Shown here one piece after another: positions 12,941-47,800 of a stretch of 64,000 nucleotides of DNA. The notes under the pieces are model-generated. The model did not search any database, had not been told where the DNA came from, and was given only the letters and a program-made list of their open reading frames with translations. This DNA is from Macrostomum lignano (lineage: Eukaryota), in the NCBI GenBank assembly GCA_002269645.1, contig NIVC01002217.1:1-64000 (forward strand). Direction: 5' to 3'. The position numbers and the translations under genes were made by a program. Every line of letters starts with the position of its first letter. Positions within the stretch are counted from its first letter, which is position 1.

Positions 12941-13054
12941 TGACTTACTTGACTTAGCTGCAGGGGGCGTCCGGCGGATGCAGCGAGGAGGCGGAGGAGA
13001 CCGCCCATTCCGCTAGCCCCTGGCGACCAACGACTTCCGTTGAAGTGGTGTCGC

Positions 13055-16759: not shown

Positions 16760-16808
16760 TGCAGATCGGATGTTGCAGCCGCCAGGAGTTCCTCCTCCTC
16801 CTCGGCGC

Positions 16809-18470: not shown

Positions 18471-18750
18471 TAGAGGGTGCGTTTATGGTCACACCAGGAC
18501 CCGGCGCCAACGAATCAGCTCGGCAGGGCCCAAGGGGCCTGCCTTAACACCCACGGGACGAGTACCCTTCGAAGTGCGCCTTGCAAGGTGAAAATCAGGA
18601 GACAGAGTCTCTTGAGCTATCAGCCCGCCAGGGGAGGCAGGTGTGAGCATCGCTGGCTGGGATAAAGGCCATACCAGTCTCATACTGCACAGATAGTTCA
18701 CCACGCCATTACGTGCAGGACCCGGGGTCCTGGGGGCAACAGCCCCGGCA

Positions 18751-23100: not shown

Positions 23101-23780
23101 TCCTGTGACAGTCCTCAGTGCCCTGTGCTTCCTGTGACAGTCCTCAGTTCCCTGTGCTTTCTGTGACAGTCCTCAGTTCCCTGTGCTTCCTGTGACAGTC
23201 CTCAGTGCCCTGTGCTTCCTGTGACAGTCCTCAGTTCCCTGTGCTTCCTGTGACAGTCCTCAGTGCCCTGTGCTTCCTGTGACAGTCCTCAGTGCCTGTC
23301 TTTCTGTGACAGTCCTCAGTTCCCTGTGCTTCCTGTGACAGTCCTCAGTGCCCTGTGCTTCCTGTGACAGTCCCCAGTGCCCTGTGCTTCCTGTGACAGT
23401 CCTCAGTGCCCTGTCCTTCCTGTGACAGTCCTCAGTGCCCTGTGCTTCCTGTGACAGTCCTCAGTGCCCTGTGCTTCCTGTGACAGTCCTCAGTGCCCTG
23501 TGCTTCCTGTGACAGTCCTCAGTGCCCTGTCCTTCCTGTGACAGTCCTCAGTTCCCTGTGCTTCCTGTGACAGTCCTCAGTGCCCTGTCCTTCCTGTGAC
23601 AGTCCTCAGTGCCCCACCCTTTCTTCTAAATGCTCATTTAAATTCCTGATAAACGTCAACCCCCCTCCAGAGTCCTTTTCGATGGACTGTAGATCAGAGT
23701 CTTGGCGCCAGCCCAGTCTCATCTTCCATCCATACGAGGCTTCATCACTTTAATGTTTGCTCAGTAAGCACTAAAAGCGG

Positions 23781-23849
<69 letters not shown>

Positions 23850-26800
23850 CGTTTCTTGGTGCTCCTCCAAGGTTCAGGAACATTCCGTTTTTTCCTGACC
23901 CTATCGTCTGTGCCTTCTCTGACTTTCCATTCTAAGCATTCATCTGAGTGGGCCGGGGTATTCAAAATTGGATGTTTTGATACCGTTTCCGAGGACTAAT
24001 AATATTTCAGCTTCATGCTGGGGTCTCATTTAATACTCATTTTTATGAGTATGAGTGTCACAGTCATTGCTCACACAACTTATTACTATTCTTCATACAA
24101 AGTATGAATAGAATCTCTCATATCTAATCGAAGGTTGACGGATTTCAAACATGATTTTACAGCAGAGTCGCACAGAGCATTCACATTTAGGTTTCATAAG
24201 TACTTAAATATTAATAACAATTGATTACCTGCCCAATTGGGCCAGATGTGCAACCGACAGCTCAGCCGCTGTGCGCTGCGCATCTGAAGGCTGCGTACGG
24301 CTGTTCAGTCCAAGGACTGGGGGGTCGCCACGCACCCCCTCAACTACCCCAGCTAATGCTGGCACCCATTTTACAGCTGGGTGAACTGAAGCAATGCAGA
24401 GTTAAGTGTCTTGCTCAAGGACACAAATCGTTCCGTGGGATCAGGAATCGAACCCCCGACCTTCAAGTCTGAGTCGGACGCTCTAACCACTAGGCTACAA
24501 CCCTCAGCCGTAAAACAGTATCTAGGACCATTCGTTAACTGGTTCCTTGACATTAGTTACTGGTGCTAATTACGGCTACTTTATTTTACTCCTACTTTTC
24601 TGAAGGCTCATAGTTATGAGATAATTCTATTGATTTTTTGTTGATACTCGTCCTGCAAGCTTGGCTTCCAATAGTCGAACAGTTCCCAAAGCCATCTGCT
24701 GGGGGCCGGGGCAGAGAGCTTGTCCTGTCAGAAACGCAGTGGCCCATCGCCAAGCCCAAGAGCAAATATTTGCCGCCTATTCAAATCGGGAGAACACAGC
24801 GACTGCACTCTTAGCTGTTGCAGTGGACTGGCATTGTCAGGGATGAGATTTGGAGTGCCGCGATTCCTCAACTGGGTAGCGAGGGGGAGCTCTGGCTTGG
24901 ACTGCGTCCAACGGCTTCCTGCATCATAGGTTTAAGGCCTTACAGATTGATGTCAAACTAAGGTTGCGTGTCTAACAGGTTTGATACCTAGCAGTTTTGA
25001 TCTCTAACAGGTTTGATGTCTAACCGGTTTCGTGTCTAACCGGTTACGTCTAACCGGTTTCATGTCTAACCGGTTTCATGTCTAACCGGTTTCATGTCTA
25101 ACAGGTTTGATGTCTAACCGGTTTCATGTCTAGCCGATTTCGTGTCTAACAGGTTTCATGTCTAATAGGTTTCATGTCTAACAGGTTTCATGTCTAACCG
25201 GTTTCGTGTCTAACAGGTTTGATACCTAGCAGTTTTGATCTCTAACAGGTTTCATGTCTAACCGGTTTCATGTCTAACCGGTTTCATGTCTAACAGGTTT
25301 GATGTCCAACCGGTTTCATGTCTAGCCGATTTCGTGTCTAACAGGTTTCATGTCTAATAGGTTTCATGTCTAACAGGTTTGATGTCTAACCGGTTTCGTG
25401 TCTAACAGGTTTGATACCTAGCAGTTTTGATCTCTAACAGGTTTGATGTCTAGCCGGTTTCATGTCGAACAGTTTTCATGTCTAACAGGTTTGGTGTCTA
25501 ACAAATTTGATGTCTAACAGGTCTCTAGCTCACCGCAGATACTTGCGCTCCACCCGAACCCATCAGACTCTTCAAGCCGGACTGCGCACTGATTCGTCAG
25601 CGAGTTCGCGACGCTCGCAGCGATTGGCGCGGCCTGCTGGCCGGTTTGACCTACGCCGGGGTGCCGTGCGTCAACCAGGCCGCCACGCTGTACAACTTCG
25701 CCGACAGGGCCTGGCTGGTGAGCGAGGGGCCTCTCACAGAAGAGAATGTGAAGTAAAGATCTTACAGTGTACAGTACATCTAGAACTTCCAACTTGCATG
25801 TCCACGCGCACGGCAGACTCAAGGTGAAGAACCAGATACTGCTCCTGGCCTATCGTCTCTGCCTGTCCTCTCTGCCTGTCCTCTCTGCCTGTCCTCTCTG
25901 CCTGTCCTCTCTGCCTGTCCTCTCTGCCTGTCCTCTCTGCCTGTCCTCTCTGCCTGTCCTCTCTGCCTGTCCTCTCTGCCTGTCCTCTCTGCCTGTCCTC
26001 TCTGCCTGTCCTCTCTGCCTGTCCTCTCTGCCTGTCCTCTCTGCCTGTCCTCTCTGCCTGTCCTCTCTGCCTGTCCTCTCTGCCTGTCCTCTCTGCCTGT
26101 CCTCTCTGCCTGTCCTCTCTGCCTGTCCTCTCTGCCTGTCCTCTCTGCCTGTCCTCTCTGCCTGTCCTCTCTGCCTGTCCTCTCTGCCTGTCCTCTCTGC
26201 CTGTCCTCTCTGCCTGTCCTCTCTGCCTGTCCTCTCTGCCTGTCCTCTCTGCCTGTCCTCTCTGCCTGTCCTCTCTGCCTGTCCTCTCTGCCTGTCCTCT
26301 CTGCCTGTCCTCTCTGCCTGTCCTCTCTGCCTGTCCTCTCTGCCTGTCCTCTCTGCCTGTCCTCTCTGCCTGTCCTCTCTGCCTGTCCTCTCTCCCTGTC
26401 CTCTCTCCCTGTCTTCTCTCCCTGTCTTCTCTCCCTGTCCTCTCTCCCTACCTGTGTCTCTAGCTGTTTTTCCCTTTCCCTAAATCTACCTCACTCATTC
26501 TACTCTAAATTTTCCACGATGCTACTGTCAGTAGCCAGGATTGTGTATACTCTTTAGCCATGTTCGTGTTATAGGGAGGTGCGCAGTCTAAATTACTTTC
26601 TTGAGTACCCGGAGACAAGTAAACCCCGCTCGCATCAGAATATCCACTTAGCCAGTTGCTACACTGGAAATCCATTGCCCCCCTTTGCTCCAACAGTTCG
26701 CCAACCTGACGCGACTGCAGGCTCGAACAGGCGCCGAGGCCTTCCCGCTGATTGACCAGACCATCTATCTGGGACACCTGGACCTGGTAAGGTTTGCCGG

Positions 26801-29800
26801 CTGTTGTTGACAGGATTTGGCACTATTAGTCGCTTTAGCGGTCCGCGAAATTCAAGCAAAATTTCAGATTCTCACTAGCGATGTCTGCTAGGCGGATTTT
26901 CAAACAAATAATTCTGTAAACTGTAACTTTGATAAGGCTAAGCTCAATAGGGCAGTCCCTATCTAGCTAATGCATTTCGCAACGAAGGCACTGCTGTGCA
27001 GCTCCTGGCTGCTAACAGAACCGAAGAAAGATCTGCCGTTTCGCTTTCCGAGCAGCAGAACAAGCAGCCAATGAAGACAATTTTGCCGGAATGATGGGGC
27101 CGCTTCGCCTCTCGCTGAAAGCCTGTCGTTTCTTGCGCCGAGATAATTATTTTCTGTGCTTCTTTTCCAGCATCCGCGCTCCGTCATTGGGGGGAGGCGG
27201 GGGGGCTGGCTGTGGTTAATTAGTCCCGTGTCCGCGCGCGCTGTGCGTCCCTAGCAACGGGTGGGCACGAGTAAAGTGCAGAGCCTCACCGCTTCACCGT
27301 CCCAGGACCGCATTGTGTCCCAATGAATGATGCCTTCGCAGATTGGCATCGCGTGCAAGCGCCCGCTGGAGCTCACAGCTGAGTCCCAATTGAGCAGAGC
27401 TGGTTGGGGGGGGGGGGGCAGATTGCTTCTAGTAGCAAAAAATAGTCTGTTCGGAAGCACATCTGTTTCCGTCCCTTCGTCTCTTCTAGCCCGCATGTGT
27501 TCCATTCTGAACTTTCTTAATCTGGCCGCCCATATAGCCGTACGGAAATCCTGTGCTGTCTAGACTGATCCACTTCTGCCTACACAACTCCAGTGCTCAG
27601 TATTGATTTCGCATCGGCTGGGGATGCACTTTGCCACCCCAGGACTGGGCTCTGATTTTAATGCGATTCTTCACTGCAGAGTGCCGAACTTCAGCGAGCC
27701 CTGGGTTGGGCACCGTGCGAGAGAGAGTTCCAGAGAGTGGCGCGTGTTTTGGGCGGCATTAATCGATATTTTTGGGGATATGCGGAGAGATGGAAACAAC
27801 TAGGCAGAGTTTATAAAGATCATAGAGAGATCATAGAGAGATCATAGAGAGATCATAGAGAGATCAAAGAGAGATCATAGAGAAATCATGCGATTAGGTA
27901 GAAATTAAGGACAGATTAAAGGGAGTGACGAGAGAGATTTGGAGAGAGAAGGCAGAAATTGGGGACAGAGGACAGAGATTAGATAGAGATTAGATAGAGA
28001 TTAGATAGAGATAAGACAAAGATTAGACAGAGGTTAGCCAGAGATTAGATAGTGGTTAGACAAAGATTAGACAGAGATTAGATAGAGATTAGATAGAGAT
28101 TAGACAGAGATTAGATAGAGATTAGACAGAGATTAGACAGAGATTCGATGGAGATTAGATAGAGATTAGACAGAGATTAGATAGAGATTAGACAGAGATT
28201 AGACAAAGATTAACCAGAGATTAGATAGAGATTAGACAGAGATTAGACAGAGATTAGATAGAGATTAGACAGAGATTAGATAGAGATTAGACAGAGATTA
28301 GACAAAGATTAACCAGAGATTAGATAGAGATTAGACAGAGATTAGACAGAGGTTAGATAGAGATTAGACAGAGATTAGACAGAGATTAGACAAAGATTAG
28401 ACAGAGATTAGCCAGAGATTAGATAGAGATTAGATAGAGATTAGACAGAGATTAGCCAGATATTAGACAGAGATTAGACAGAGATTAGACAGAGATTAGA
28501 CAGAGATTAGATAGAGATTAGCCAGATATTAGACAGAGATTAGACAATGACCAGGGAGAGATCATAGATCAATTTAGCATTGCAGTTGTTGCCGCAGTTA
28601 AACCGGGGAATTTTTAAATCGGTAATTTTTCTATCCTGATTGGTCTGCCGATCAAGGGAGACGAGGGAGGGGGTCGAGCTGCCCAGACGCGAATTGGTTG
28701 GCCGCCTCAGGCTTGAATAGTTAGCCAACTCCCTTATGTTTACCGCTGGCGAGCAAATGCCACTTCTGCCGATGACTTCTAGACTGTTGGGTGCGGAGCT
28801 CCGCCCCCTATCTGCTTGCCGCCTCTCCTCCCTTCCCTCATCATATTTCTTTCCCCAGCAGATGGGGAGAAACTGTGCGCTACAGTGGCGGCACGCCCCC
28901 CCCCCTAAATCGATTTGGCGCAATTCCCACTCCCCCTCCCCCTGCTGGCTTGGGAGAAAACCGGCGGATGTTCTTTGAAGGGGCGAATGGGGATCGAATT
29001 AGGGAAGCCAGGCCTGCAGTATCCGACTCTCGAGCCATAACTTACATAGTAGAAGTGCCGAGTGAAGGTATTCATTTTATTTACTGTGAATTCAATAAGT
29101 CACTCTCGATGAAAACAGATCAATACAGCGTGCTCGATAGATAGCGTCTTTGGAACTCGTCAGTTTTTGCTCACTTGGTTATGATCGGACTCGTTTTTGC
29201 TCTGATTTGAGTCACTCTGCTCTGATTTGAGTCACTCTGCACTCATTTGAGTCACTCTGCACTCATTTGAGTCACTCTGCTCCCAATTGAGTCACTCTGC
29301 TCTGACTTGAGTCACTCTGCTCCCATTTGAGTCACTCTGCTCTGATTTGAGTCACTCTGCACTCATTTGAGTCACTCTGCACTCATTTGAGTCACTCTGC
29401 ACTCATTTGAGTCACTCTGCTCCCAATTGAGTCACTCTGCTCTGACTTGAGTCACTCTGCTCCCATTTGAGTCACTCTGCTCTGATTTGAGTCACTCTGC
29501 ACTCATTTGAGTCACTCTGCACTCATTTGAGTCACTCTGCACTCATTTGAGTCACTCTGCACTCATTTGAGTCACTCTGCTCCCAATTGAGTCACTCTGC
29601 TCTGACTTGAGTCACTCTGCTCCCATTTGAGTCACTCTGCACTCATTTGAGACACTTTTGCATTCATTTGAGTCACTCTGCTCCCATTTTAGTCACTCTG
29701 CTCCCATTTTAGTCACTCTGCTCCCATTTGAGTCACTCTGCTCTGATTTAAGTCATTCTACACTCATTTGAGTCACTCTGCTCCCATTTGAGTCACTCTG

Positions 29801-32800
29801 CTCCCATTTGAGTCACTCTGCTCCCATTTGAGCCACTCTGCAATCATTTGAGACACTTTTGCATTCATTTGAGTCATTCTGCTCCCATTTGAGTCACTCT
29901 GCACTCATTTGAGACACTTTTGCATTCATTTGAGTCACTCTGCTCCCATTTTAGTCACTCTGCTCCCATTTGAGTCACTCTGCTCTGATTTAAGTCACTC
30001 TACACTCATTTGAGTCACTCTGCTCCCATTTGAGTCACTCTGCTCCCATTTGAGTCACTCTGCTCCCATTTGAGCCACTCTGCAATCATTTGAGCCACTC
30101 TGCTCCCATTTGAGCCACTCTGCAATCATCAGAGTCACTCTGCAATCATTTAAGTCACTCTGCAATCATTTGAGCCACTCTGCAATCATCAGAGCCACTC
30201 TGCAATCATTTGAGCCACTCTGCAATCATTAGACTCTCAATGTCAGTTTCAATGAAAAAATATGACGGCCATTGATTTCCAAATTTATTTAATCAGTAAA
30301 AGACAAATTTGAATGCGCAAGATCCCTCATTTTCGAGGCCAACCAATCAGTTCGAAAATTATCATCTTCTGGTGTAATTTTAGCTCCTATGAATCACGAG
30401 GCGACTTGCGAGATCTGCGTGAACATCAATAGAGGTCTGAGACCGGGGCCTCCGAGACTCCGTCTGCACAGTTTATCTGTAGATTCCCTCTTCAATAAAA
30501 GTAGAATGAATACAGCAAAATAAAGCACACAGAGGCAGAGACCGACATACAAAAATAATGCAAAAAACATCAATCCGTACGGAGTAAGCGAGGTAAAACT
30601 GCTTGCAGAGAGAGAGAGCTAGTGTGAGGAAACGGCAAATACATCCATAATAATAATAGTAATAATAAATAAATAAATAATAACAGTAATAATAAAGATA
30701 GTAATAGTGTTTATAATAATAGTAATAATTACTAGTGTGATAACAATTATTACTATTATACTTACAATATTACTAAAGATTACTATAGATTAAAATACGC
30801 TCGTATTACTCTTATATATAGTAATAATATTATTACAATTAATAACAATATTAACAATAATAAGACAAAACAGCGTGGCAATGGTTTCGCGGCCAGCCTT
30901 AGCGGTACTCATTGAAAAGCGGCAATTGATGGAAAAACTTGAAGGGGACACCACACGGCTCGACAACTACTGGAAGAGATGAGCGAGCAAAAAATCCACG
31001 TTGCAAATGGGGAACTGCCCTAATATTTTTGGTTTCTGATTTGCTTTCACTGCTAATCTTAGCGGAGCCGCAAACCGGCATAAATGCACTTTAGAACTGA
31101 CTGAGCCTGATTCAAATCAGCGCGCTGTTTTGTTAAAAACAGTTCAATCCGTGCAGTGATTTCTAAATAAGACGACTAACTCTTGAGAACTTCAGACTCA
31201 AGCTTAACTACGATATTATTATTAAAGAAGTAATTTCATTTTGTCTACTGCGTATGGCGCTTCTGTAGGAGGAAAACACCAACGTAAGAGCTACACACTC
31301 TCAATAGAGACAGAGACAGGAGACAGAGAGAGAAAGACAGTCAGAGTGAATAAATTCTGAGAGTTAAGTCGGCCTATTACTCTTATCTTATATTCTTCTC
31401 TCATCCTATCCTATTCTGTTCACTATGTCATTCTTACATTACCTTTCATGAAATAAACGAAATCTATCAAAGCATTTCTGGGCTGCTGCCAATAATGGAT
31501 TTGCCTGTCGGAACAACTAAGAAATTTTCTTTTGCTATTGTTCGAGCTCGAAGGGTGCAGTGGGCGGTTGGATCAACAGAATAATATTAATCATTCAGAG
31601 GAAAATAACACCGATTTGTCGATAAAGTGTAACGTCCGGTTATTAATATTATTTGATTATGTTAGCGTGTAATGCCTCTGCGCTGGGCTTCAATTTGAAG
31701 ATTGCCTGTGGCGCATTTCTTGTAGCGCTTGGTGCTGGCAGTGTGCCAGGCGCAGCCTGCGGTCCGCCTGTAGGGGTCCCTGTAGTAGGCGCAGTAGGAG
31801 AAGCTGGTCAGGCACATGAAGTAGTCCCTGCTGGGGTCGAAGCTGCACGAATTCGCCTGTTCTGCCGTGACGTTTTTGATTGGTTGAAACAGTCTGTCCT
31901 CGATCTGATTGGGTTGCGAAGGAGGGGAGGTGCTGAGGGTATTGAGAGGCCGATCTGCTTAATGTATTTTGTTTATCTGCCCGATGCATTCATACATGTA
32001 TATCTGTGGAATGTGTTTGTCGATCTGTCGAATGTGTTTGTCGATCTGTCGAATGTGTTTGTCGATCTGTCGAATGTGTTTGTCGATCTGTCGAATGTGT
32101 TTGCTAGTGTGATGAATGTGTTTGTCAATGTATCGAATGTGTTTGTCAATGTGTTTAATGTGTTTGTCGATGTATTAAATGTGTTTCTCAATGTGTTGAA
32201 TGTGTTGAGTGTGTTTGTCAATGTGTTGAATGTGTTTTTCGATCTGTCTAATGTGTTTGTCAATGTATCTAATGTATTTGTCAATGTGTTTAATGTGTTT
32301 GTAGATGTATCGAATGTGTTTGTCAATGTGTTGAATGTGTTTTTTGATCTGTCTAATGTGTTTGTCAATGTATCTAATGTATTTGTCAATGTGTTTGATG
32401 TGTTTGTCAATGTATCGAATGTATTTGTCAATGTGTTTAATGTGTTTGTCGATGTATTGAATGTGTTTGTCAATGTGTTGAATGTATCTAATGCGTTTGT
32501 CAATGTGTTTAATGTGTGTCATTGTATCTAATGTGTTTGTCAATGTGTTTAATGTGTTTGTCAATGTATCTAATGTGTTTGTCAATGTGTTGAATGTGTT
32601 TTTTGATCTGTCGAATGTGTTTGTCAATGTGTTTAATGTGTTTGTCGATGTATTGAATGTGTTTGTCAATGTGTTTAATGTGTTTGTCGATGTATTGAAT
32701 GTGTTTGTCAATGTGTTGAATGTATCTAATGCGTTTGTCAATGTGTTTAATGTGTTTGTCAATGTATCTAATGTGTTTGTCAATGTGTTTATTGTGTTTG

Positions 32801-35800
32801 TCAATGTATCTAATGTGTTTGTCGATGTATCTAATGTGTTTAATGTGTTTGTCGATGCATCGAATGCGTTTGTCAATGTGTTGAATGTGTTCATCGATCT
32901 GCCACATTTCTTTGTAGATCTTCCTAATGTATGTATAATCTACCTAATAGGCTCGTCTATCTGTCTGATGTCCTCGATTTTCTTAATGTATCTGGTGATC
33001 CAATGCAAATGCTGGCAATGTTTCCGTCTACATGATGATCTTATAGCGAATAATACTTCGACGAAAAATTGAATTTGTTCATCCGCCTGCTCTTTATTTA
33101 ATTATCCAACTAATCCTTAATGGCATTATATTTGTATAAGTCTAGGGCGGATTATCCTAAACCGCCCTTCGGCCACTCCGATAAACGCACTTGTTCATTT
33201 TGGCAGCGGTCAGAAAAAAGGTTCCAAGCAGCGGAAATCGCACAGCCCCGTCCAGCCTCAATCTGTGTCGGCTGTATGAAGCGGAGGCTGGGCGCATTTT
33301 TCGCGCGCCTAAAAAACACACAAGTCTGAGATCCCGGCCTAGAGATAAGAAGTCCAGCGCCCGCCGCAGAAGCCACTCAATCAACCGGCTGATTCCACAA
33401 CTGCTAGCTGATAACCGCTGCTGACCCCCCCATGCCCCGCTGCTAGCCTGCAGATCAACTTTGGCTCGCTTTTCGGCTTCGGGTCACCCACTTCGGAGTC
33501 CCGCCTTGCTGCACACTTTCTCTGCGCTGCCCAGCCTTCAGTGCTGGCTGCTGAGCTTCTGCCAGCTTGGCACTTCGCCCGCTGTTGCTCGGGCTCCGTC
33601 TCTCTCTTCTCCCTCTCCCCCCTCACTTCCCTTCTCACTCTCCATTCTCACTCTCCTCTCTTACCCCCTCTCACTCCTCACTCACCCTCTCTCACCCTCC
33701 TCTCTCACCCCCTCTCACTCTCCTCTCTCACCCTCTCTCCCTATCATCATTCACTTCTCTCACTCCCCTCCTCTCCCTCTCACTCATCCTCTCACTCCCC
33801 TCTCACTCATCCTCTCACTCATCCTCTCACTCCCCTCTCACTCATCCTCTCACTCTCCCCTCACTCATCCTCTCACTCTCCCCTCACTCATCCTCTCACT
33901 CTCCCCTCACTCATCCTCTCACTCCCCTCTCACTCATACTCTCACTCCCCTCTCACTCATCCTCTCACTCCCCTCTCACTCATCCTCTCACTCCCCTCTC
34001 ACTCATACTCTCACTCCCCTCTCACTCATCCTCTCACTCCCCTCTCACTCATCCTCTCACTCCCCTCTCACTCATACTCTTACTCCCCTCTCACTCATAC
34101 TCTTACTTCCCTCTCACTCATCCTCTCACTCCCCTCTCACTCATCCTCTCACTCCCCTCTCACTCATCCTCTCACTCCCCTCTCACTCATCCTCTCACTC
34201 CCCTCTCACTCATTCTCTTACTCCCCTCTCACTCATACTCTTACTCCCCTCTCACTCATACTCTCACTCCCCTCTCACTCATACTCTTACTCCCCTCTCA
34301 CTCATACTCTTACTCCCCTCTCACTCATACTCTCACTCCCCTCTCACTCATCCTCTCACTCCCCTCTCACTCATCCTCTCACTCCTCTCTCACTCATCCT
34401 CTCACTCCCCTCTCACTCATTCTCTTACTCCCCTCTCACTCATACTCTTACTCCCCTCTCACTCATACTCTCACTCCCCTCTCACTCATACTCTTACTCC
34501 CCTCTCACTCATACTCTTACTCCCCTCTCACTCATACTCTCACTCCCCTCTCACTCATACTCTCACTCCCCTCTCACTCATACTCTCACTCCCCTCTCAC
34601 TCCTCCTTGAAGTTCGGCAGTGAAATGGGCCATATTGAACAAACTACAGATTAAACATATTCATTTCCTGGCGTTATTGACAGAGGATGGAATGTTGGTT
34701 TTCCAACATTAAAATTTCTATCATTTCTAAACTTGATTTGTTCTATTCTGAGGTAGGAAAAAGATTTTTTTCAAACAAATTTTTTTTTCGCATATTTTAT
34801 TAAATTGACTGCGTTGCAAAAAGTTAGGGTCGCTACAGTGTTTTTCTTCAAAAAATGTTCCACAAACAAGTTTTTATTAAAAAAAAATTTTCTGAACACG
34901 CAAAATTGCAGGCTGAATTCGATTTGTGCAACTTTTTCAACTAGCTATGCAATTATTTTAGCTAAAAAGTACGCTGTGGATATCGTAAAAAATTGTTCAT
35001 ATTCTGCAAATTCGTTCGAAAAAGGCAGCAGAAAATTTAATTTGAAATCGTAATTAAAAGTTTTCTCTTTTCTATTTGTTCGTTTGAAATCTCACTCCCA
35101 TCACTCAAATCTCACTCCAATTGCTCAATTCTCACTCCTATCGCTCAAATATCACTCCCATCACTCAAACCTCACTCCCATCACTCAAATCTCACTCCCA
35201 TCACTCAAATCTCACTCCCATCACTCAAATCTCACTCCCATCACTCAAATCTCACTCCCATCACTCAAACCTCACTCCCATCACTCAAATCTCACTCCCA
35301 TCACTCAAACCTCACTCCCATCACTCAAATCTCACTCCCATCACTCAAATCTCACTCCCATCACTCAAATCTCACTCCCATCACTCAAATTTCACTCCTA
35401 TTGCTCAAATATCACTCCCATCGCTCAAACCTCACTCCCATCACTCAAATCTCACTCCCATCACTCAAATTTCACTCCTATCGCTCAAATATCACTCCCA
35501 TCACTCAAACCTCACTCCCATCACTCAAATCTCACTCCCATCACTCAAATCTCACTCCTATCGCTCAAATCTCTCTCCCATCACTCAAATTTCACTCCTA
35601 TTGCTCAAATCTCACTCCCATCACTCAAATCTCACTCCCATCACTCAAATCTCACTCCAATTGCTCAATTCTCACTCCTATCGCTCAAATATCACTCCCA
35701 TCACTCAAACCTCACTCCCATCACTCAAATCTCACTCCCATCACTCAAATCTCACTCCCATCACTCAAATCTCACTCCCATCACTCAAATTTCACTCCTA

Positions 35801-38800
35801 TCGCTCAAATATCACTCCCATCACTCAAATTTCACTCCTATTGCTCAAATATCACTCCCATCACTCAAATCTCACTCCTATCGCTCAAACCTCACTCCCA
35901 TACTCAAATCTCACTCCTATCGCTCAAACCTCACTCCTATCGCTCAAATATCACTCCCATCACTCAAATTTCACTCCTATCGCTCAAATATCACTCCCAT
36001 CACTCAAATCTCACTCCTATCGCTCAAACCTCACTCCCATACTCAAATCTCACTCCTATCGCTCAAACCTCACTCCTATCGCTTAAATATCACTTCCTTC
36101 ACTCAAATCTCACTCCCATTACTCAAATCTCACTCCAATTGCTCAATTCTCACTCCTATCGTTCAAATATCACTTCCTTCACTCAAATTTCACTCCCATT
36201 ACTCAAATCTCACTCCAATTGCTCAAATCTCACTCCCATTACTCAAATCTCACTCCAATTGCTCAAATCTCACTCCTCTCACTGTTTTCTTATATCTCAT
36301 ATATTCCTAGATCTGTTCCCCTATATATTTGCCCTGCATCTGGCCTATCCCTCGCTATCCCTGTTCCAGACAAAAGTGCGTTGAATACTTGTAACTTTGC
36401 ACTTCTACAGCTCCTTCAAATGCTAGACTGCATGCAAAGCCGGTATTGAAGGTTGAGAGATTTGGGCGCCCGTAGCAGCGGCCCCCCGTCAAGCGTCATT
36501 CGCTGACAGCCGACAGGCGGCCGCTGATTGAACCGTAGCCCTTTGTCTTCCCCCAGCTGTTGCCGCGTAGGCGGAATGGACGGCGGTTTCTATTGAAGTG
36601 CCATTGAAGTTTTGACAATTCGACATGCGCCTTCGCCCATCAGCTATGGGTCTATCAAGCTCTTTCCCTTGAAAGTTGAATACCCTAATCATTTCGGCGT
36701 CGGTAATGAAAACAAGGTTGACACTTTCTTAGAAAAGAAAGGAAGCAGACTAATGAGAAGGGAATTAACTTTTGATAATAAAGTTCTAGTACTGTAGATT
36801 TGTGATTCGTGTACTGGTTAATTTTTGGTTCCTGTACTGATTAATGTATGGTTCCTGTACTGGTTGATTAAAGATTCCTGTACTGGTTGATTTATGCTTC
36901 CTATACTGGTTGCTTTATGGTTCCTGTACTGGTTGATTTATGCTTCCTATACTGGTTGATTTATGGTTCTTGTACTGGTTGATTTATGATTCCTGTACTG
37001 GTTGATTAATGATTCCTGTACTGGTTGATTTATGATTCCTGTACTGGTTGATTTATGCTTCCTATACTGGTTGCTTTATGGTTCATGTATACTGGTTGAT
37101 TTACAGTTCCTGTACTGTAGTTTCCATCACATTTATGCTTTTGACTTAGGGTTATTGTAAGGCTACTTAACCCCTTCCCTACTCCATATGTAGATAGGCT
37201 CGGTACATATCTCATTGAACGCGCCTACTCACCCGACACTTTGAGCAGCCTCTAGCGTAGGTTCCGTGCCTGAGGTATCTGGCCTGCTGATCCGTCACCA
37301 CGGGGGAGCCCAGCTCCGAGTTAATTATTGCCTTCCGCATCGTCTTATTGGGCCACTGGGCGATCCAGCTGCACACGGACAGCATCGGCTGGCCGTGCTC
37401 CAGTTTGCCTGGCAACGGGGGCGTCAGTAACAGTCCGAGTTTCATTCTGGGAAATACGCCCCATCTCTCTAAGGTGGTCAGCTGTGAACACTCTCATCTC
37501 ATTGCCTCACTCTCATCTCATTGCCTCACTCTCATCTCAGTGCCTCACTCTCATCTCATTGCCTCACTTTCATCTCATTGCCTCACTCTCATATCATTCC
37601 TCTCACTTTCATCTCATTGTCTCTCACTCTCATCTCATTGCCTCGCTCTCATCTCATTGCCTCGCTTTCATCTCATTGCCTCGCTCTCATCTCATTCCTC
37701 TCACTCTCATCTCATTGCCTCACTCTCATCTCATTGTCTCTCACTCTCATCTCATTGCCTCACTCTCATCTCATTGCCTCACTCTCATCTCATTGTCTCT
37801 CACTCTCATCTCATTGCCTAACCCATCCGCCCCACCCGCTCACCGGTCACCAGGTACAGTTTTTTCAAATGCACTTCGCGCGAGATTATGCTGTTGGCTT
37901 CGCCGTGGTACCTGACCACGATGCCGTGGCCGCAGTTGTCTCTCTCTCCGTAAATCCACAGGTGCATCCGACGGTTGGGGATGAGGTTTGGAATCTGCGT
38001 TCGGAATCCGTTGATTTTGCGGGCGGGATTGATGAGTTGACAGTTGATCTGTTACTCCCCAACAGAGCACTTATTATCCAGCAAAGCACTCACCTTGGCC
38101 GAGTTGCGAAATACCGCTTTCACGCTGACCCAGTAGCGCTTGAGGTGCATGGTTGAGCTCAAATATTCACCGGTCATTCGTAGGAACCGAACTTTCAAAG
38201 CTGTCAATGCAGTTATGGGGGTAATGCGGCAGTTATTGCAAGGTTATACAATAAGATTATCGATGCATGCCCATGCGCACGTCAGAAAATGTACATGTGG
38301 ACAAGTACAGCTGGGCAAGTCGCTGTCCGATTCTCACCGAAGTCGCTGGCGCAGAAGGCCACCTGCGGGTGCAGCGGGTGATGCGGCCGGCAGGGGCAGG
38401 GCTTGGTGCCGAACCCATTGGGTATGACGGCTGCCACTGGCGGCGGCCCGCCGGCGGCCAGGGCCCAGCCGCCCACTAGCAGGAGGCTGGCGAGGCTGAA
38501 CAACCGGGCGGCGGCTGTCGGCGACGAGTTTGCCGGCGTCTGCGTCGGCGGCAGCGGCGGCGAGCGCAGGCGGGAGGGCTCAAGTGTCGGGCTGCTGCTG
38601 CTTGAACGGGCCATGCCGCAGGGCAAGCAGCATCGCCGATTCAGGACTGGCTGGCGGCTGGGGGATTCGAGCTGGGACCTTGGGCGCGCTGACGCAGAGA
38701 AGGGAGCGCAGGCTTGGAGCGGCAGAATTGCGCCAAAAGTTCAACAATAAACGGCAAAAGCAGAAGAGGGGACCAGAGAGCGGTGCTTGGGCGAGTCGTC

Positions 38801-41800
38801 AAAGTCTGCTTTTTCAATAGCCAAGTGCCGATCATAGCTGGGGGGAGTTGAGGTGGCGTCTCCCCCCTCTTAATCCTTTATCCTATCCGGGCGGGCCGCT
38901 CCGTCCCCTCCCTGCCACTTGCTATCCCCGGGAGCCGGGAAGACGGGAAGAAAGAGATTAGGAAGGAAGGAGAGAGACATGGGCTTAGAGACGCTAGAAG
39001 ACCGGGAGACTCAGTAAGGCCGGCGATTGGGCCCTGCTGTTCCGGTCGGGGATGGAGGGGGCTCTGCGTGCGGGTACACTGGAGTGCGCGAGAGCTCGAC
39101 AACGGGGACAGGCGGGGACTCGAGGGTTCAGGCAGGATTGCAATCGCCGCTCATTAATCTGGCTATGAAGCTCTCTGCCGCTAAATTGCTTTCCTAGCCG
39201 TGTTCTGTCTCTCTCTACTAGTATCTACTCGAGCAGAACCCTCCAGATGAAGCTGAGCCATAAGGTCTATGTGCCGCAGGGCGTACTTGATGAGCCCCTC
39301 CCCCGGTAAGGGTGAAACCTGTCTTAATCCCAACGTTGGTTCAAGTCGTCGCGATTCTGCCGAAATTTCCTTATAGTGTTTAAAGATTATGCCCCCCCCC
39401 CCTGTCAAACAAAAACCAAGTTGTGAGCCCGAAGTCAGGACTCTGGGGAATCGCTATTGGGACAGTGATGGCCAGGGGTAGAGCATCTGATCTTCTTCAA
39501 TTGTCGGGAGATTTAATTTTATTGGCCAATAAATACTGACTTGGCAGCAACCTCCCCTATGTCAGGGATGCTAAACTGTGTCAGGAATGCTAAACTGTGC
39601 CAGGGATGCTAAACTGGGCCAGGGTTGCTAAACTGTGTCAGGGATGCTAAACTGTGTCAGGGATGCTAAACTGTGTCAGGGATGATAAACTGTGCCAGGG
39701 ATGCTAAACTGTGTCAGGGATGCTAAACTGTGTCAGGAATGCTAAACTGTGCCAGGGATGCTAAACTGTGCCAGGGTTGCTAAACTGTGCCAGGGTTGCT
39801 AAACTGTGTCAGGGATGCTAAACTGTGCCAGGGTTGCTAAACTGTGCCAGGGTTGCTAAACTGTGTCAGGGATGCTAAACTGTGTCAGGGATGCTAAACT
39901 GTGTCAGGGATGATAAACTGTGCCAGGGATGCTAAACTGTGTCAGGGATGCTAAACTGTGTCAGGAATGCTAAACTGTGCCAGGGATGCTAAACTGTGCC
40001 AGGGTTGCTAAACTGTGTCAGGGATGCTAAACTGTGTCAGGGATGCTAAACTGTGTCAGGAATGCTAAACTGTGTCAGGGATGCTAAACTGTGCCAGGGT
40101 TGCTAAACTGTGTCAGGGATGCTAAACTGTGTCAGGGTTGCTGTCAGGGATGCTAAACTGTGTCAGGGTTGCTGTCAGGGATGCTAAACTGTGTCAGGGT
40201 TGCTGTCAGGGATGCTAAACTGTGTCAGGGTTGCTGTCAGGGATGCTAAACTGTGTCAGGGTTGCTGTCAGGGATGCTAAACTGTGTCAGGGTTGCTGTC
40301 AGGGATGCTAAACTGTGTCAGGGTTGCTGTCAGGGATGCTAAACTGTGTCAGGGATGCTAAACTGTGTCAGGGTTGCTGTCAGGGATGCTAAACTGTGTC
40401 AGGGATGCTAAACCGTCCCTATCCTCGATCTACTCTCAGCCCAGCCCATATGCCCAGCAGAAGCCGCGGTGCATGAAAAACAAATGCCGACTTTTCTGGG
40501 CCCCGACGTCGGCTGGCGGACTGCTCAGATATGAATAATAAATGCGGGCTGAGCTCAGGGCCGCTCGCGTCAGCTTTAATGCGTGAATAATACAACATTA
40601 TGCTCGCATGCGCGAATACGCAATGCCAAGAAGACCTAAAAGCGGAACCTGGAGTGGCAGCTCTTCCTGAAAAATAGGATTAGGCTAGGGCTCAGCTCAG
40701 TGGTGAACGCAGCTGAATCTCGAGCCGCGACCTCTGATTCGGTAGACTGTACATGCCTATCGATTAGAAAGTCATGAGTCGAGCATGTGCTCAGCAGTCA
40801 AGCGGAATGGGCAGAATCGCCTCAGTCGAGCATGTGCTCAGGAGTCAAGCAGAATGGGCAGATGCCGCAGAATCGCCTCAGTCGAGCATGTGCTCAGGAG
40901 TCAAGCAGAATGGGCAGATGCCGCAGAATCGCCTCAGTCGAGCATGTGCTCAGGAGTCAAGCAGAATGGGCAGATGCCGCAGAATCGCCTCAGTCGAGCA
41001 TGTGCTCAGGAGTCAAGCAGAATGGGCAGATGCCGCAGAATCGCCTCAGTCGAGCATGTGCTCAGGAGTCAAGCAGAATGGGCAGATGCCGCAGAATCGC
41101 CTCAGTCGAGCATGTGCTCAGGAGTCAAGCAGAATGGGCAGATGCCGCAGAATCGCCTCAGTCGAGCATGTGCTCAGGAGTCAAGCGGAATGTGCAGAAT
41201 CGCCTCAGTCGAGCATGTGCTCAGGAGTCAAGCGGAATGGGCAGAATCGCCTCAGTCGAGCATGTGCTCAGGAGTCAAGCGGAATGTGCAGAATCGCCTC
41301 AGTCGAGCATGTGCTCAGGAGTCAAGCGGAATGGGCAGAATCGCCTCAGTCGAGCATGTGCTCAGGAGTCAAGCGGAATGTGCAGAATCGCCTCAGTCGA
41401 GCATGTGCTCAGGAGTCAAGCGGAATGGGCAGAATCGCCTCAGTCGAGCATGTGCTCAGGAGTCAAGCGGAATGTGCAGAATCGCCTCAGTCGAGCATGT
41501 GCTCAGGAGTCAAGCGGAATGTGCAGAATTGCCTCAGTGCTGCTTGTGGGATGATGTTGATGAAAGCGTTGCTTGCGGCTATAAATTTTGTACAGCTCGT
41601 GGACTTTTTCTCAGAATTCCAAAGATCTTCAACTGAGAAGTGGAGAATTTATTGTAATTAAAAAAACAGCTCAATCTTACAAAATTTGCGCTTCGCGGAA
41701 CAGCCGGCCATGCCAAGTGGTCGCCTTGGCGCTACTGCTGTCTGAAAACACACTGAGCGAGACAACCCCTTGACAGATGGCGCAGAAAACACAGTCTGGT

Positions 41801-44800
41801 CTGGGCGGTGCCTTTCAATGATCCCGACTTCTGTTTCTCAATAAGTCGGTGCGTGGCGGGGAGGGGATTATGAATAATTGCTGAGTATTGAGATTGTGAG
41901 AATGGAATTATTGCCTAGTTGGGGGGGGGCATTTCGCTGACTGCGGTGTTGGCGTCTGGCGGCGCGATCTGAGCTGAGCACAGACCAAGAAGTAAGACAT
42001 GGGGAGTAAAAATCTTGTGCCTCCTTCCCAGCCAACCCCTCATCCGCGGTCGATAGTGGGTGAAGAATTCCCTTCCTAAGCCACTCCCACTCGTCTGCTT
42101 TTCGGTTCCTACTAGGCAGATTGACAAAAAAAATAAAAATGTGGTAATTAATTGTAGCTTTTTAGACTGTCTTTAGGTATCTTTTATTCTAGAGATTAAT
42201 TCTAATCACTTATTTTAAAGCTTGCCGGTATAAAAACTTGCGGAAATAAAAGACTGAGTTAAACTTACAAGGTAACCACTGAAGTAGGCTAAACTACAGG
42301 TTAGAAAATATCGCCGTTCGTAGAAGCTTTTGCCTCTTCCATGATTTTATTCTTTAAGCATGCTTCGCATTTTAATGCATTCACACAATATTGAATGGAA
42401 TCAAGACTTAAACCCAAACTGTTCTGCTTCTGGGCGCTTATCTACTTCTGGGCGCTTATCTGCTTCTGGGCGCTTATCTGCTTCTGGGCGCTTATCTGCT
42501 TCTGGGCGCTTATCTGCTTCTGGGCGCTTATCTGCTTCTGGGCGCTTATCTGCTTCTGGGCGCTTATCTACTTCTGGGCGCTTATCTGCTTCTGGGCGCT
42601 TATCTGCTTCTGGGCGCTTATCTACTTCTGGGCGCTTATCTACTTCTGGGCGCTTATCTGCTTCTGGGCGCTTATCTACTTCTGGGCGCTTATCTGCTTC
42701 TGGGCGCTTATCTGCTTCTGGGCGCTTATCTGCTTCTGGGCGCTTATCTGCTTCTGGGCGCTTATCTGCTTCTGGGCGCGTATCTGCTTCTGGGCGCTTA
42801 TCTGCTTCCATTGAGGCTTTCCTGCCTCTGTTGATGGTGACGCAGACAGACAAAATACTCGTAGTTCGTACTGACAACTGAATAATGGTAATCCTGTTGC
42901 TTAACATTGGGACTAGTCGACTGGAGAAATTCCACCTCCAGTGTACACTGATAACAGTCTTGAGGCTGAGTGAAACAGCCCCAGAGTTGGATTGTGATTC
43001 CAGCCGTTTCGAAGTCTGACTGCATTAAAAATAACCAAAGAAAATCCTGAGACAACTTGAAAGTGCAAAGAAAGAACAATCACAACTTGAAAACAATAAG
43101 CTCGTACTTGGCGAGTGCCACTGTTGGGAGAAACCAGAAAGACCAGTAAAATGCTCTGTACCCGCTACCCTGTTCCCCTTCACCTTCACCCACTATCGAT
43201 GTTTTTGGCAGGACGGAGGGACCATTTTTTCCGCAGCTTTTTGTCAAAAAACACGCCAAGGCAGGGAATGGGGCTTGCGAAGTCGAGATACTTCTTGGTC
43301 TGTGAAACTGAGTAATAAAAAATTGCTTCCAAATTCTTTCCGATCGACGCAAATCTGAGGACTCGAATTGTGCACTATTTATGGTTTTTATGATATTAAT
43401 CTACTTGTATGCATAGCATTTGTGCTTAAGCATATTATGTCAGGGTTGCTAAACTGTGTCAGGAATGCTAAACTGTGTCAGGGATGCTAAACTGTGTCAG
43501 GAATGCTAAACTGTGTCAGGGATGCTAAACTGTGTCAGGGATGCTAAACTGTGTCAGGGATGCTAAACTGTGTCAGGGATGCTAAACTGTGTCAGGAATG
43601 CTAAACTGTGTCAGGGATGCTAAACTGTGTCAGGGATGCTAAACTGTGTCAGGGATGCTAAACTGTGTCAGGGATGCTAAACTGTGTCAGGAATGCTAAA
43701 CTGTGTCAGGGTTGCTTAACTGTGTCAGGGATGCTAAACTGTGTCAGGGATGCTAAACTGTGTCAGGGATGCTAAACTGTGTCAGGGATGCTAAACTGTG
43801 TCAGGGATGCTAAACTGTGTCAGGGATGCTAAACTGTGTCAGGGATGCTAAACTGTGTCAGGGATGCTAAACTGTGTCAGGGATGCTAAACTGTGTCAGG
43901 GATGCTAAACTGTGTCAGGGATGCTAAACTGTGTCAGGGTTGCTAAACTGTGTCAGGGATGCTAAACTGTGTCAGGGATGCTAAACTGTGTCAGGGATGC
44001 TAAACTGTGTCAGGGATGCTAAACTGTGTCAGGGATGCTAAACTGTGTCAGGGATGCTAAACTGTGTCAGGGATGCTAAACTGTGTCAGGGATGCTAAAC
44101 TGTGTCAGGGATGCTAAACTGTGTCAGGGATGCTAAACTGTGTCAGGGATGCTAAACTGTGTCAGGGATGCTAAACTGTGTCAGGGATGCTAAACTGTGT
44201 CAGGGTTGCTAAACTGTGTCAGGGATGCTAAACTGTGTCAGGGATGCTAAACTGTGTCAGGGATGCTAAACTGTGTCAGGGATGCTAAACTGTGTCAGGG
44301 ATGCTAAACTGTGTCAGGGTTGCTAAACTGTGTCAGGGATGCTAAACTGTGTCAGGGATGCTAAACTGTGTCAGGGATGCTAAACTGTGTCAGGGATGCT
44401 AAACTGTGTCAGGGATGCTAAACTGTGTCAGGGATGCTAAACTGTGTCAGGGATGCTAAACTGTGTCAGGGATGCTAAACTGTGTCAGGGATGCTAAACT
44501 GTGTCAGGGATGCTAAACTGTGTCAGGGTTGCTAAACTGTGTCAGGGATGCTAAACTGTGTCAGGGATGCTAAACTGTGTCAGGAGAGATAAGAACTGTG
44601 TTAAGAGAGATAAACTATCTCAGAGGTTGCTAAACTGTATCAGACACATGCACTAGACTGTGTCAGGGACTGCTAAGTATCAGGCTCCAGGCATTGTCAG
44701 GGGTCTCAGTACTGTGTCAGCTACGGTAAGAAATAAGTTAGATAGTCTCTAAGATGCCGAAAATCAAAGATTTAACTCAGGCGGGCTTGAAATGCTAAAA

Positions 44801-47800
44801 ATAGAAGCAGCAAGTTGCAGAGCAGCGCGCGAACCCCTTTCTATTGATATTGCGTCGTCGATTGGGTCTGTCAATAGAAATGGTATCCCAGTCTCAAAAT
44901 AATCATTTCCAGCTCTTCTATTTCGCCATCCCACGACTGACCGGTTATTTTTCCTCACGCTGAAAAAAATTTTGCTCATAAGTGGAATGGCGATTTCTAT
45001 TTTGGTTGCGCTTAACGACTAATGCCTTCCTTCTCTCTGTGTCTCTGGACTCTGTCCCCTGTCCAAGCCCTCCTTCCTGCCTGAAGTTTCATTACGAGTA
45101 TAAACGGAGGCCGTTTGCACTAACCCTGCCAGCCCGCCCCCTCCCACTCCCCCTCAAAATGGATGAAATTTGCCAAAAATATCTCGCTGAAGCTAGGGCG
45201 GATCCGCGGCTTCCCCATAGAATAGCCAACTAGGGCAGGGGGTAGCGTGTTTACACAGCCAGTGCTGGGCTGCGATTTTCAATGGGACAGTGGGCTGAGC
45301 CATGGAGGCCCAGCAACCAACTCTTCCCCGAACAGCCCAACAGCTTTTTAGCTTGCACACAAAACACAAACTACGACTCAGTTGAAGCTTTTCTTTGTAG
45401 AATTAAGTCTGATTTTAAAGCTGAATGAATTCTCCGTGATGGAGTAGAAATCATTGCACAATGAGCAGTAGTCTATGAGCTAGATTCCAGTGTCTGAATC
45501 GCGTTACGACCCCAGGTCATGCGATTCACAGCCGTGAGAGCCAACCCCAGTAGTCTATGAGCTAGATTCCAGTGTCTGAATCGGGTTACGACCCCAGGTC
45601 ATGCGATTCACAGCCGTGAGGGCCAACCCCAGTAGTCTATGAGCTAGATTCCAGTGTCTGAATCGCGTTACGACCCCAGGTCATGCGATTCACAGCCGTG
45701 AGAGCCAACCCCAGTAGTCTATGAGCTAGATTCCAGTGTCTGAATCGGGTTACGACCCCAGGTCATGCGATTCACAGCCGTGAGGGCCAACCCCAGTAGT
45801 CTATGAGCTAGATTCCAGTGTCTGAATCGCGTTACGACCCCAGGTCATGCGATTCACAGCCGTGAGGGCCAACCCCAGTAGTCTATGAGCTAGATTCCAG
45901 TGTCTGAATCGCGTTACGACCCCAGGTCATGCGATTCACAGCCGTGAGGGCCAACCCCAGTAGTCTATGAGCTAGATTCCAGTGTCTGAATCGGGTTACG
46001 ACCCCAGGTCATGCGATTCACAGCCGTGAGAGCCAACCCCAGTAGTCTATGAGCTAGATTCTAGTGTCTGAATCGCGTTACGACCCCAGGTCATGCGATT
46101 CACAGCCGTGAGAGCCAACCCCAGTAGTCTATGAGCTAGATTCTAGTGTCTGAATCGCGTTACGACCCCAGGTCATGCGATTCACAGCCGTGAGGGCCAA
46201 CCCCAGTAGTCTATGAGCTAGATTCCAGTGTCTGAATCGCGTTACGACCCCAGGTCATGCGATTCACAGCCGTGAGAGCCAACCCCAGTAGTCTATGAGC
46301 TAGATTCTAGTGTCTGAATCGCGTTACGACCCCAGGTCATGCGATTCACAGCCGTGAGAGCCAACCCCAAGGCACAGACAGTGTACATGCCTGACGATTA
46401 GATAGTCAGGGCTGCTGTACACCCTGTGTGAGCGTGTTCATGAGTCGAGCATGTGCTCAGGAAAGAGCGGTAAATGCGGAATTGCCACTGCACTGGTTGT
46501 CGCGGTCACAATTTTCTATATTTTCCTCTTGGTTTTTCACTTAACTTCTGAGAATTTATTCAGCTTCAAAATGAGACCAAGTTCGTTAAAAAATAGTTTA
46601 AACAAAACCGAAGTTATGATAACTTTAGTAAACACAGAAAGAACACAGAGACTGGGCCTGCCTTTTGTTTCTAAACAGAAAAGCCGCAGTCAATCTGCGG
46701 TGGTCTGAAAATCATGTGATGAGTGGCAAATCCAGGTTCTGGTTCTGGGACTCCATGGCTGAGCGCTGGGCCGGCACTTCAGTTAGTTACTAATAAATCT
46801 CCCGCGCCCAGTGCCTGCCAACGGCCTTGGTTACACTCACCCAGTCTCTCCTGTATCTCCCTCCCCCCTCAATCTTTCTTCCCCAAGTCTCGAAAACTTC
46901 AACTGAGCCCTCGTCCCTTCTCCTACCCCAACTCCGAACTGCCGCCCCCGCAGCAGGCGGCGGCGCCGTCTGCGGCATCGGCGGTAGCGGGCGCGGACGG
47001 CACCGGCGGCGGATTTCCAATCGCGCTGAAGATTGGCCACGCTCACAATGGAATTGGCAAGGTGAGTGGGCTTTTAATTGGGATTCCGCATTTTTATGAT
47101 TTGTTCTAATTAATTGATCCGGCGGGGAGCAATTTCCCAACTGTTTGGCAATTAAAACGGTGCTTATTAATTTTGAATTAGCAGATACTCAACAAAATTG
47201 ATTGAGCAATAAAAATTTAGCAGCAATATAAAAAAATTGATTTGCCTTTCTGGCAATTTTAAAGCAAAGAGTACCTAGCTAACTTACAGAGCCAATGTAG
47301 CTATTAAAACTGAAGCCAAAATCCCTAATTTTTGGGCTTCTATGAGTTACTTTTTAATTGGCATTGTATTTTCAATTAGATCTTGTCCTGCTCCAGCAGT
47401 GGAAGCAAAAGCTATGAGCGTTTCCTCAAAATCCTCGGTGTCGTCTTTGACCTTCCACGAGAATGCCAAAGCCATCAGCGTCAAAGTCCGCTCCAACACA
47501 GCTCATCAGCGACTTCAGCTAATCGCTTCTTCAGCGCTTTCAAAATTCCGCTTTGCGCGTTGTCACCGGGTGCCACAGCTGCTCTGCCGTCGGGCACCCC
47601 TGAATGCAGAATGCACCGTGCTTTCGGAAAGAGCTCACTCTGAGCTATTCGCCTCCCAATACTGGATCTCCTGCACCCTCCCCAGCTGCACATCGCGTGC
47701 TTCTTCTCAACTGGCGGCGCCAAAGAACTAACTACCCTGGCTGGCTGCACCTACGCGGCCAAACTCGAATCTTCGACCTCTCCGCTCTGACGCCGTTGCT

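Follow-up and report, generated by a model that had tools for sequence, protein, structure and literature searches.

Introduction

Synapsin and TIMP form a textbook case of nested genes whose arrangement has been conserved across animals, and the nesting of Drosophila Syn and Timp was reportedly described by Pohar et al. in 1999. In this work, such a pair is described for Macrostomum lignano, an early-branching, free-living and regeneration-competent model flatworm. The stretch of DNA analyzed, termed the window in the following, consists of the first 64 kb of the M. lignano contig NIVC01002217.1, and it carries a synapsin gene (synapsin A), read from the plus strand, whose fifth intron contains a complete TIMP gene (TIMP-A) on the minus strand.

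TIMP has been found reverse-nested in a synapsin intron of human, amphioxus, Ciona, sea urchin, Capitella, Drosophila and Nematostella, at a site that is conserved in the protein alignment (Candiani et al., 2010; PMC2825198). The same survey, which was conducted without flatworms, reported the loss of the nested TIMP in nematodes and a single synapsin gene in the invertebrates covered. A title cited in PMC2599898 places mouse Timp4 in 'intron 5' of Syn2, and a review finds no evidence that host and guest are coordinated in expression or function in mammals (PMC7308558). Literature searches returned no report of synapsin-TIMP nesting in flatworms. The nesting as such is not new; the Platyhelminthes are a new phylum for the pair. 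The initial annotation of the window had proposed that the locus extends an ancient micro-synteny, and this stands in so far as one phylum is added, the conservation from Nematostella to human having already been published (PMC2825198).

As in the vertebrate pairs SYN1/TIMP1, SYN2/TIMP4 and SYN3/TIMP3, the flatworm TIMP lies inside one synapsin intron on the opposite strand, the phase-0 site being shown here for marmot SYN1/TIMP1. Five coding TIMP exons and multiplication as whole units are further features common to the flatworm and the vertebrate pairs. On the other hand, the flatworm duplication appears to be independent, and the flatworm TIMP starts with CPC rather than CTC or CSC, has a long hydrophilic N-terminus with a 17-residue linker between a hydrophobic segment and the first cysteine (Cys1), and differs in the cysteine spacing of its C-domain, which lies outside the Pfam profile alignment. 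The flatworm synapsin has 10 exons rather than 13 and its host intron consists to 47% of tandem arrays. With the invertebrate Syn/Timp pairs the flatworm shares a reverse TIMP in a positionally conserved intron, an arrangement confirmed here in the abalone Haliotis and the hoverfly Episyrphus; in contrast to the surveyed invertebrates, M. lignano possesses two divergent synapsins, each of which hosts its own TIMP. The C-terminal ...C-x-W-x(n)-K-C ending of TIMP-A may resemble the invertebrate type, as in Drosophila Timp. In Fugu, the host-guest unit was reportedly likewise duplicated as a block and the copies then diverged; these duplicates are said to stem from the teleost genome duplication.

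Results

A TIMP gene nested antisense in intron 5 of a synapsin gene

The exons of synapsin A were first placed by tblastn with a sequence of human synapsin-1, which is 100% identical to database mammalian synapsin-1, and the junctions were then read in the DNA. The human synapsin-1 and TIMP query sequences served exclusively as leads for locating exons and all conclusions are based on database proteins and loci. Ten colinear coding pieces were found on the plus strand between 20.1 and 51.8 kb and resulted in a model of 10 exons (20170-51776, plus strand) that encodes 538 amino acids in an open frame, with every intron bordered by GT..AG. The product covers the full Pfam profiles of the synapsin N-terminal domain (PF02078, 112.6 bits) and of Synapsin_C (PF02750, ATP-grasp, 189.8 bits); Pfam Synapsin_N gave 10.8 bits, which is sub-threshold by itself. 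The domain A phosphorylation motif is present at the N-terminus (MLNYLKRRFSSGDLQGE compared to MNFLKRRFSSGDLQGE in Haliotis), and the C-terminus resembles domain E (...DTMKNLRKTFAG compared to ...DTMRNLRKTFAG in Haliotis). By its domains, the protein is predicted to be a synapsin of the neuronal type, transcribed from left to right. Its closest database relatives are synapsins from molluscs, flukes and insects with only 43-45% identity. The features of the host gene are as follows, with sizes compared to those in marmot SYN1, Haliotis, the fluke Clonorchis and the bryozoan Watersipora:

20170-20546, plus strand: exon 1, domain A motif YLKRRFSSGDL, B region and start of the C domain (...VVDEPHTD/W)
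21142-21199, plus strand: exon 2, 58 bp (SKYFRSRKIQSDWDVRVEQ), 58 bp also in marmot, Haliotis and Clonorchis
21282-21361, plus strand: exon 3, 80 bp compared to 92 bp elsewhere, boundaries and phases unchanged
25567-25717, plus strand: exon 4, 151 bp as in Haliotis, Clonorchis and Watersipora
26697-26786, plus strand: exon 5, 90 bp, ends ...FPLIDQTIYLGHLDL, donor CTG|GTAAGG
26787-46956, plus strand: intron 5 (host intron), 20,170 bp, phase 0; its last position would be 46887 or 46953 with the alternative acceptors
46957-47061, plus strand: exon 6, 105 bp, carries ...GGGFPIALKIGHAHNGIGK, 5' border uncertain
49078-49229, plus strand: exon 7, 152 bp compared to the canonical 143 bp
50267-50341, plus strand: exon 8, 75 bp as in all compared species
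50420-50522, plus strand: exon 9, 103 bp as in all compared species
51351-51776, plus strand: exon 10 and stop, end of the C domain, Pro/Ala-rich region and domain-E-like end ...DTMKNLRKTFAGIGIFRDM*

Intron 5 is the largest intron of the host gene. Three in-frame phase-0 AG acceptors follow pyrimidine tracts at its end (46887|46888, 46953|46954 and 46956|46957). The last of these was adopted because it yields the shortest exon 6 (105 nt compared to 63-66 nt in other animals) and thus comes nearest to the usual size. Of the intron span originally proposed, 26787-46887, the start is exact, exon 5 ending with ...QTIYLGHLDL at position 26786, whereas the end is one of the three possible acceptors. 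Whichever of the predicted acceptors is chosen has no effect on the finding of nesting.

Inside this intron, a TIMP-like N-terminus (CPCRPHHPLHPQVAFCASDF) was located on the minus strand at 38.4 kb, and five exons were then read from the three minus-strand frames and the DNA. They have GT..AG borders, extend from 38614 to 31662 and encode 317 amino acids including 12 cysteines:

38614-38338, minus strand: coding exon 1, long N-terminal region, hydrophobic segment and CPCRPHHPLHPQVAFCASDF; phase-1 donor placed as in marmot TIMP1 and Haliotis TIMP
38200-38094, minus strand: coding exon 2
37994-37844, minus strand: coding exon 3, donor identical in position and phase to that of marmot TIMP1
37408-37233, minus strand: coding exon 4, ends ...GCSKCR
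31904-31662, minus strand: coding exon 5 and stop, five C-domain cysteines, matches the annotated protein P0121
41711-41681, minus strand: candidate 5' mini-exon, 31 nt, MAGCSAKRKF, donor GTAAGA, predicted partner acceptor at 38688

The mini-exon lies 3.1 kb upstream, and its equivalent is the first exon of an annotated protein of 352 amino acids (P0122) at a duplicate locus, which suggests that TIMP-A may have a sixth, 5' exon. TIMP-A, at 31662-38614 or up to 41711 with the mini-exon, lies wholly within the intron at 26787-46956 on the opposite strand, and no exon is common to both genes.

TIMP-A scores 42.1 bits against Pfam TIMP PF00965 (cutoff 23.1, E=1e-10) over the N-domain, the match covering residues 73-202. 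The NTR profile PF01759 gave 23.4 bits (cutoff 21.9), and TIMP-1 N-domains in the PDB match TIMP-A with E=4e-6. The C-terminal third lies outside the Pfam and PDB alignments yet has the expected five cysteines. All 12 cysteines come after the hydrophobic segment, beginning with CPC, and all align with those of TIMP-B, the second TIMP of M. lignano (see below). Furthermore, TIMP-A is 100% identical over 317 residues to the annotated BOX15_Mlig022355g1 (P0121), whose gene range of 31662-38614 corresponds to window coordinates. Pfam scores above the cutoffs and identity to an annotated protein thus bear out the proposal, made in the initial annotation, of a complete five-exon TIMP antisense in synapsin intron 5. 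A model calculated with AlphaFold2 on the single TIMP-A sequence was unusable (mean pLDDT 33, pTM 0.17). Rfam and tRNA scans of the window yielded no matches.

The host intron occupies the same position as in other animals

Exact-match exon chains were rebuilt for SYN1 of marmot and for the synapsins of Haliotis, Clonorchis, Watersipora and Episyrphus, and the introns were mapped on a protein alignment. The Haliotis chain reproduces its protein only partly, owing to the complex C-terminus of the isoform, and is exact around the host intron. In the five-species protein alignment, all nine introns of synapsin A coincide with marmot SYN1 introns in column and phase. Intron 1 (phase 2) lies in a column common to marmot, Haliotis, Clonorchis and Watersipora, and the host intron is found in column 317 with phase 0 in the window as well as in marmot, Clonorchis and Watersipora. 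The exon that precedes it ends with ...YPNHKEM in marmot, ...SHKEM in Clonorchis, ...FFPNPRDL in the hoverfly and ...YLGHLDL in the window. Exon sizes of 58, 151, 90, 75 and 103 bp in synapsin A recur in other animals, the 90 bp of exon 5 being common to marmot, Clonorchis, Watersipora and synapsin B, the second synapsin of M. lignano. Three of the loci compared carry a nested TIMP at this site (coordinates are those of the respective locus):

Marmot SYN1 (L005): exon ends ...YPNHKEM at 12567, next exon LSSTTYPVVVKMGHAH at 47558; nested TIMP1 of 207 residues at 39463-42498 on the opposite strand
Abalone Haliotis (L001): exon ends ...NHKEM(VSNLW), next exon LITPKFPVVVKIGHAH; antisense TIMP at 64582-68741
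Hoverfly Episyrphus (L008): exon ends ...FFPNPRDL, next exon FSWSKFPCVLKAGHCH; antisense TIMP at 11878-14785

In the annotated Haliotis isoform the donor of the host intron lies five codons downstream, and a canonical ATG|GTGAGT is also present. In the hoverfly, most other synapsin introns are displaced and the host intron is retained. The host intron had been suspected in the initial annotation to be equivalent to that of vertebrates; direct mapping supports this, the column and phase of the intron agreeing with those of the TIMP-bearing introns in marmot SYN1 and the hoverfly.

The guest agrees with its vertebrate counterpart in a similar manner. Introns 1, 3 and 4 of TIMP-A are identical to those of marmot TIMP1 in position and phase, and intron 2 has the same phase and is about seven codons off. 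These data bear on the possibility that a TIMP entered the intron independently in the flatworm lineage, by convergent insertion or retroposition. TIMP-A is indeed too divergent for orthology to be established by sequence alone, as only its N-domain scores with Pfam and phmmer retrieved no matches from outside Macrostomum, apart possibly from one fragment, P0244. However, TIMP-A has introns, three of them at the positions and phases of vertebrate TIMP introns, and is therefore not a retrocopy. Moreover, agreement with mollusc, fly and mammal in both intron and orientation would have had to come about by chance. Independent entry is therefore considered extremely improbable.

A recent duplicate and an old second pair

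A second M. lignano contig, NIVC01003104.1 (L003), is near-identical to and colinear with the window over 30 kb (20.1-50.3 kb) and exhibits the same antisense nesting, which rules out a misassembly. In the L003 copy, TIMP intron 4 is enlarged by about 6.6 kb (near window position 34960) and measures 11.7 kb compared to 5.3 kb, and the copy numbers of the arrays differ. Selection could not be assessed by comparing the two loci: short introns are 98-99.5% identical compared to 99.4% for exons, which leaves the comparison without power. The lower conservation of introns seen by BLAST is due to the tandem arrays, and the L003 duplicate is too recent to provide information on selection.

A search with phmmer among 1.84 billion representatives returned only two other relatives of TIMP-A. 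One is TIMP-B (BOX15_Mlig025997g1), an M. lignano protein with 38-39% identity to TIMP-A, all 12 cysteines aligned, and the same five-exon structure and intron positions. The other, P0244, is a TIMP-like fragment of 143 amino acids, 42% identical to the C-terminal half of TIMP-A. TIMP-B resides antisense in the equivalent intron (10,184 bp) of synapsin B, whose exon sizes are canonical and which is about 51% identical to synapsin A; the model of synapsin B loses its frame in the last exon, where one further C-terminal intron has still to be placed. The second pair is located as follows:

Contig NIVC01000158.1, 454200-478536, reversed (L009): pair B, with TIMP-B at 10001-14337 on the plus strand and the synapsin B exons at 21623-4430 on the minus strand of the locus

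In a neighbour-joining tree, synapsins A and B group together (100% of 50 bootstraps) and are placed next to the trematodes (96%). Since pair B is nested in the same way and the tree joins the two synapsins, the unit is taken to have been duplicated in the Macrostomum lineage. As judged from these sequences, the host-guest unit was duplicated once as a block, long ago, after the Macrostomum lineage had separated from that of the flukes and independently of the vertebrate triplication, and pair A was copied again very recently, giving rise to the near-identical locus.

The existence of two old pairs raises the question whether pair A is a degenerating duplicate, with pair B holding the ancestral functions and synapsin A and/or TIMP-A becoming a pseudogene or having changed in function. 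Several observations fit such a course. Exons of 80, 105 and 152 bp in synapsin A stand against 92, 63-66 and 143 bp elsewhere, GHLDL replaces NHKEM, synapsin B is canonical, the synapsin product is unannotated, and TIMP-A is without close relatives from outside M. lignano among the representatives searched, apart possibly from the P0244 fragment. Against this, all 10 + 5 exons of pair A are open and have canonical splice sites, the Pfam scores are far above threshold, the full set of 12 cysteines is conserved between TIMP-A and TIMP-B at 38% identity, and TIMP-A is annotated as a gene product in two copies. Degeneration of pair A is thus regarded as improbable.

Lineages without the guest

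In Clonorchis (L004), the intron at the host site is 1.4 kb long and contains no TIMP according to gene calls and tblastn of the synapsin locus. No TIMP was detected by tblastn in the synapsin loci of the bdelloid rotifer Adineta (L006) and of Watersipora (L007) either; the intron at the site is short or lacking, and Watersipora has an 18-bp micro-exon at the site of the host intron. For Dicrocoelium, where gene calls only were considered, there is no call nested at synapsin. Several losses of the guest seem to have taken place within the Spiralia.

An atypical TIMP N-terminus

As TIMP-MMP complex structures have established, canonical inhibition by TIMPs depends on the free amino group of Cys1, which is exposed by cleavage of the signal peptide and chelates the zinc of the protease. 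In the nested TIMP of Haliotis, an ordinary signal of 22 residues stands immediately before CMC. The hydrophobic segment of TIMP-A, at about residues 38-55, comes after a stretch of 37 hydrophilic residues (72 if the mini-exon is included), and the 17-residue linker separates it from Cys1 at residue 73. TIMP-B is laid out in the same manner, and the junction F-G-x-x-[P/G]-C-P-C (CPCRPH), 17-25 residues past the hydrophobic segment, is common to both proteins. An overlooked intron separating the hydrophobic segment from CPC, the removal of which would yield an ordinary signal peptide, was considered and rejected: the only GT..AG option measures 36 nt and the extension would remain.

The layout would be compatible with Macrostomum TIMPs being non-canonical, such that Cys1 never becomes a free N-terminus, for example in a type II membrane-tethered or an N-terminally extended NTR protein. 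We consider this rather unlikely. If it were true, a nested locus 600 million years old would have persisted, and would even have been duplicated as a unit, although the zinc-chelating inhibition by the guest had been lost or changed, and something besides canonical TIMP activity would hold the synapsin-TIMP pair together.

Tandem arrays and surroundings of the locus

Within the host intron (20,170 bp), twelve tandem arrays with units of 11-82 bp add up to 9,501 bp (47%). The heavy repeat invasion noted in the initial annotation is thereby substantiated, the repeats being minisatellite-like and not recognizable transposons:

27971-30223: two arrays, of an 11-bp unit x52 at 27971-28546 and a 20-bp unit x51 at 29198-30223
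32002-37117: four arrays within TIMP intron 4, of 21/42/63 bp at 32002-32930, 23/69 bp at 33600-34607, 20 bp x60 at 35087-36276 and 23 bp at 36789-37117
37489-37819: 19-bp array, most of TIMP intron 3
39560-46369: five arrays upstream of TIMP, of 19 bp (TGTCAGGGATGCTAAACTG) at 39560-40413 and 43438-44643, 47 bp at 40777-41538, 18 bp at 42423-42808 and 82 bp x11 at 45466-46369

The two arrays of the 19-bp unit TGTCAGGGATGCTAAACTG (39560-40413 and 43438-44643) bracket the candidate TIMP mini-exon at 41711-41681.

Tandem arrays are a general feature of contig NIVC01002217.1. A 29-bp unit repeated 77 times (21385-23614, 94% matches) makes up over half of synapsin intron 3, and further arrays are located in intron 7 (49253-50170, 22 bp x42), in intron 9 (50568-51332, 14 bp x55), at 52.6-54.3 kb and at 59.8-61.3 kb. 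About 1.7 kb upstream of the synapsin start lies an apparently intact non-LTR retrotransposon (13058-18482, minus strand) with a 1,265-codon frame for endonuclease, reverse transcriptase and RNase H, preceded by a 557-codon frame without a Pfam match. Two exons of a gene for a glycine-cleavage H-protein are found at about 3400-5150 on the plus strand (Pfam GCV_H, 97.9 bits on the joined pieces), and the intron of this gene is filled by a long tandem array (about 3640-4950). A 283-codon frame at 62450-63298 on the minus strand matches Pfam DUF5524 with 70.6 bits (cutoff 35.6) and probably belongs to a further gene located downstream of synapsin.

Discussion

The arrangement in the window very likely represents the ancestral animal synapsin-TIMP host-guest pair, retained in free-living M. 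lignano. Each gene would have its own promoter, and synthesis of the synapsin pre-mRNA would read through the TIMP unit, the product of which is expected to be a secreted or membrane-exposed protein of the NTR fold. As moving the guest out would need a break within an essential host, the guest would be either kept in place or lost outright, the latter having happened in nematodes and, apparently, flukes. Functional coupling of the two products would not be required for such passive retention, which we infer to be the most economical reason for the persistence of the pair.

The alternative is active regulatory coupling, in which antisense transcription enforces exclusive or coordinated expression and selection preserves both position and orientation of the guest. 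The same intron and opposite orientation are encountered in four phyla and in both old pairs of M. lignano, a pattern more specific than mere linkage, and the fly lineage has shifted most other synapsin introns and not the host intron. On the other hand, the review of the mammalian pairs records no evidence for coordinated expression or function (PMC7308558), and the guest has been lost with a normal synapsin kept in Clonorchis, Watersipora and Adineta as well as in nematodes (PMC2825198). Active coupling is therefore judged unlikely.

Several points weigh against the reading of the locus as a retained ancestral pair. A passive trap would not by itself account for the constant opposite orientation of the guest. 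The acceptor of exon 6, the use of the TIMP mini-exon and the expression of both genes are predicted from the DNA. The gene calls at the three M. lignano loci are limited to the TIMPs and include no synapsin host, nor was an M. lignano synapsin found in the protein database. Finally, the neighbour-joining tree that unites synapsins A and B is open to long-branch effects. The public annotation apparently lacks both synapsin genes of M. lignano, which can now be annotated.

Current understanding of the synapsin-TIMP pair is not overturned by our findings. They add the Platyhelminthes and show that the host intron of M. lignano is the very intron that holds TIMP in the mammal, the mollusc and the dipteran. 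The duplication of the unit, which appears to be independent of that in vertebrates, would offer a second natural experiment in what becomes of host and guest once both have been duplicated. In the flukes sampled, in a bdelloid rotifer and in a bryozoan the guest has apparently been lost, which indicates that the arrangement is ancestral but dispensable, and this dispensability bears on whether selection favours the nesting or the nesting is simply difficult to reverse.

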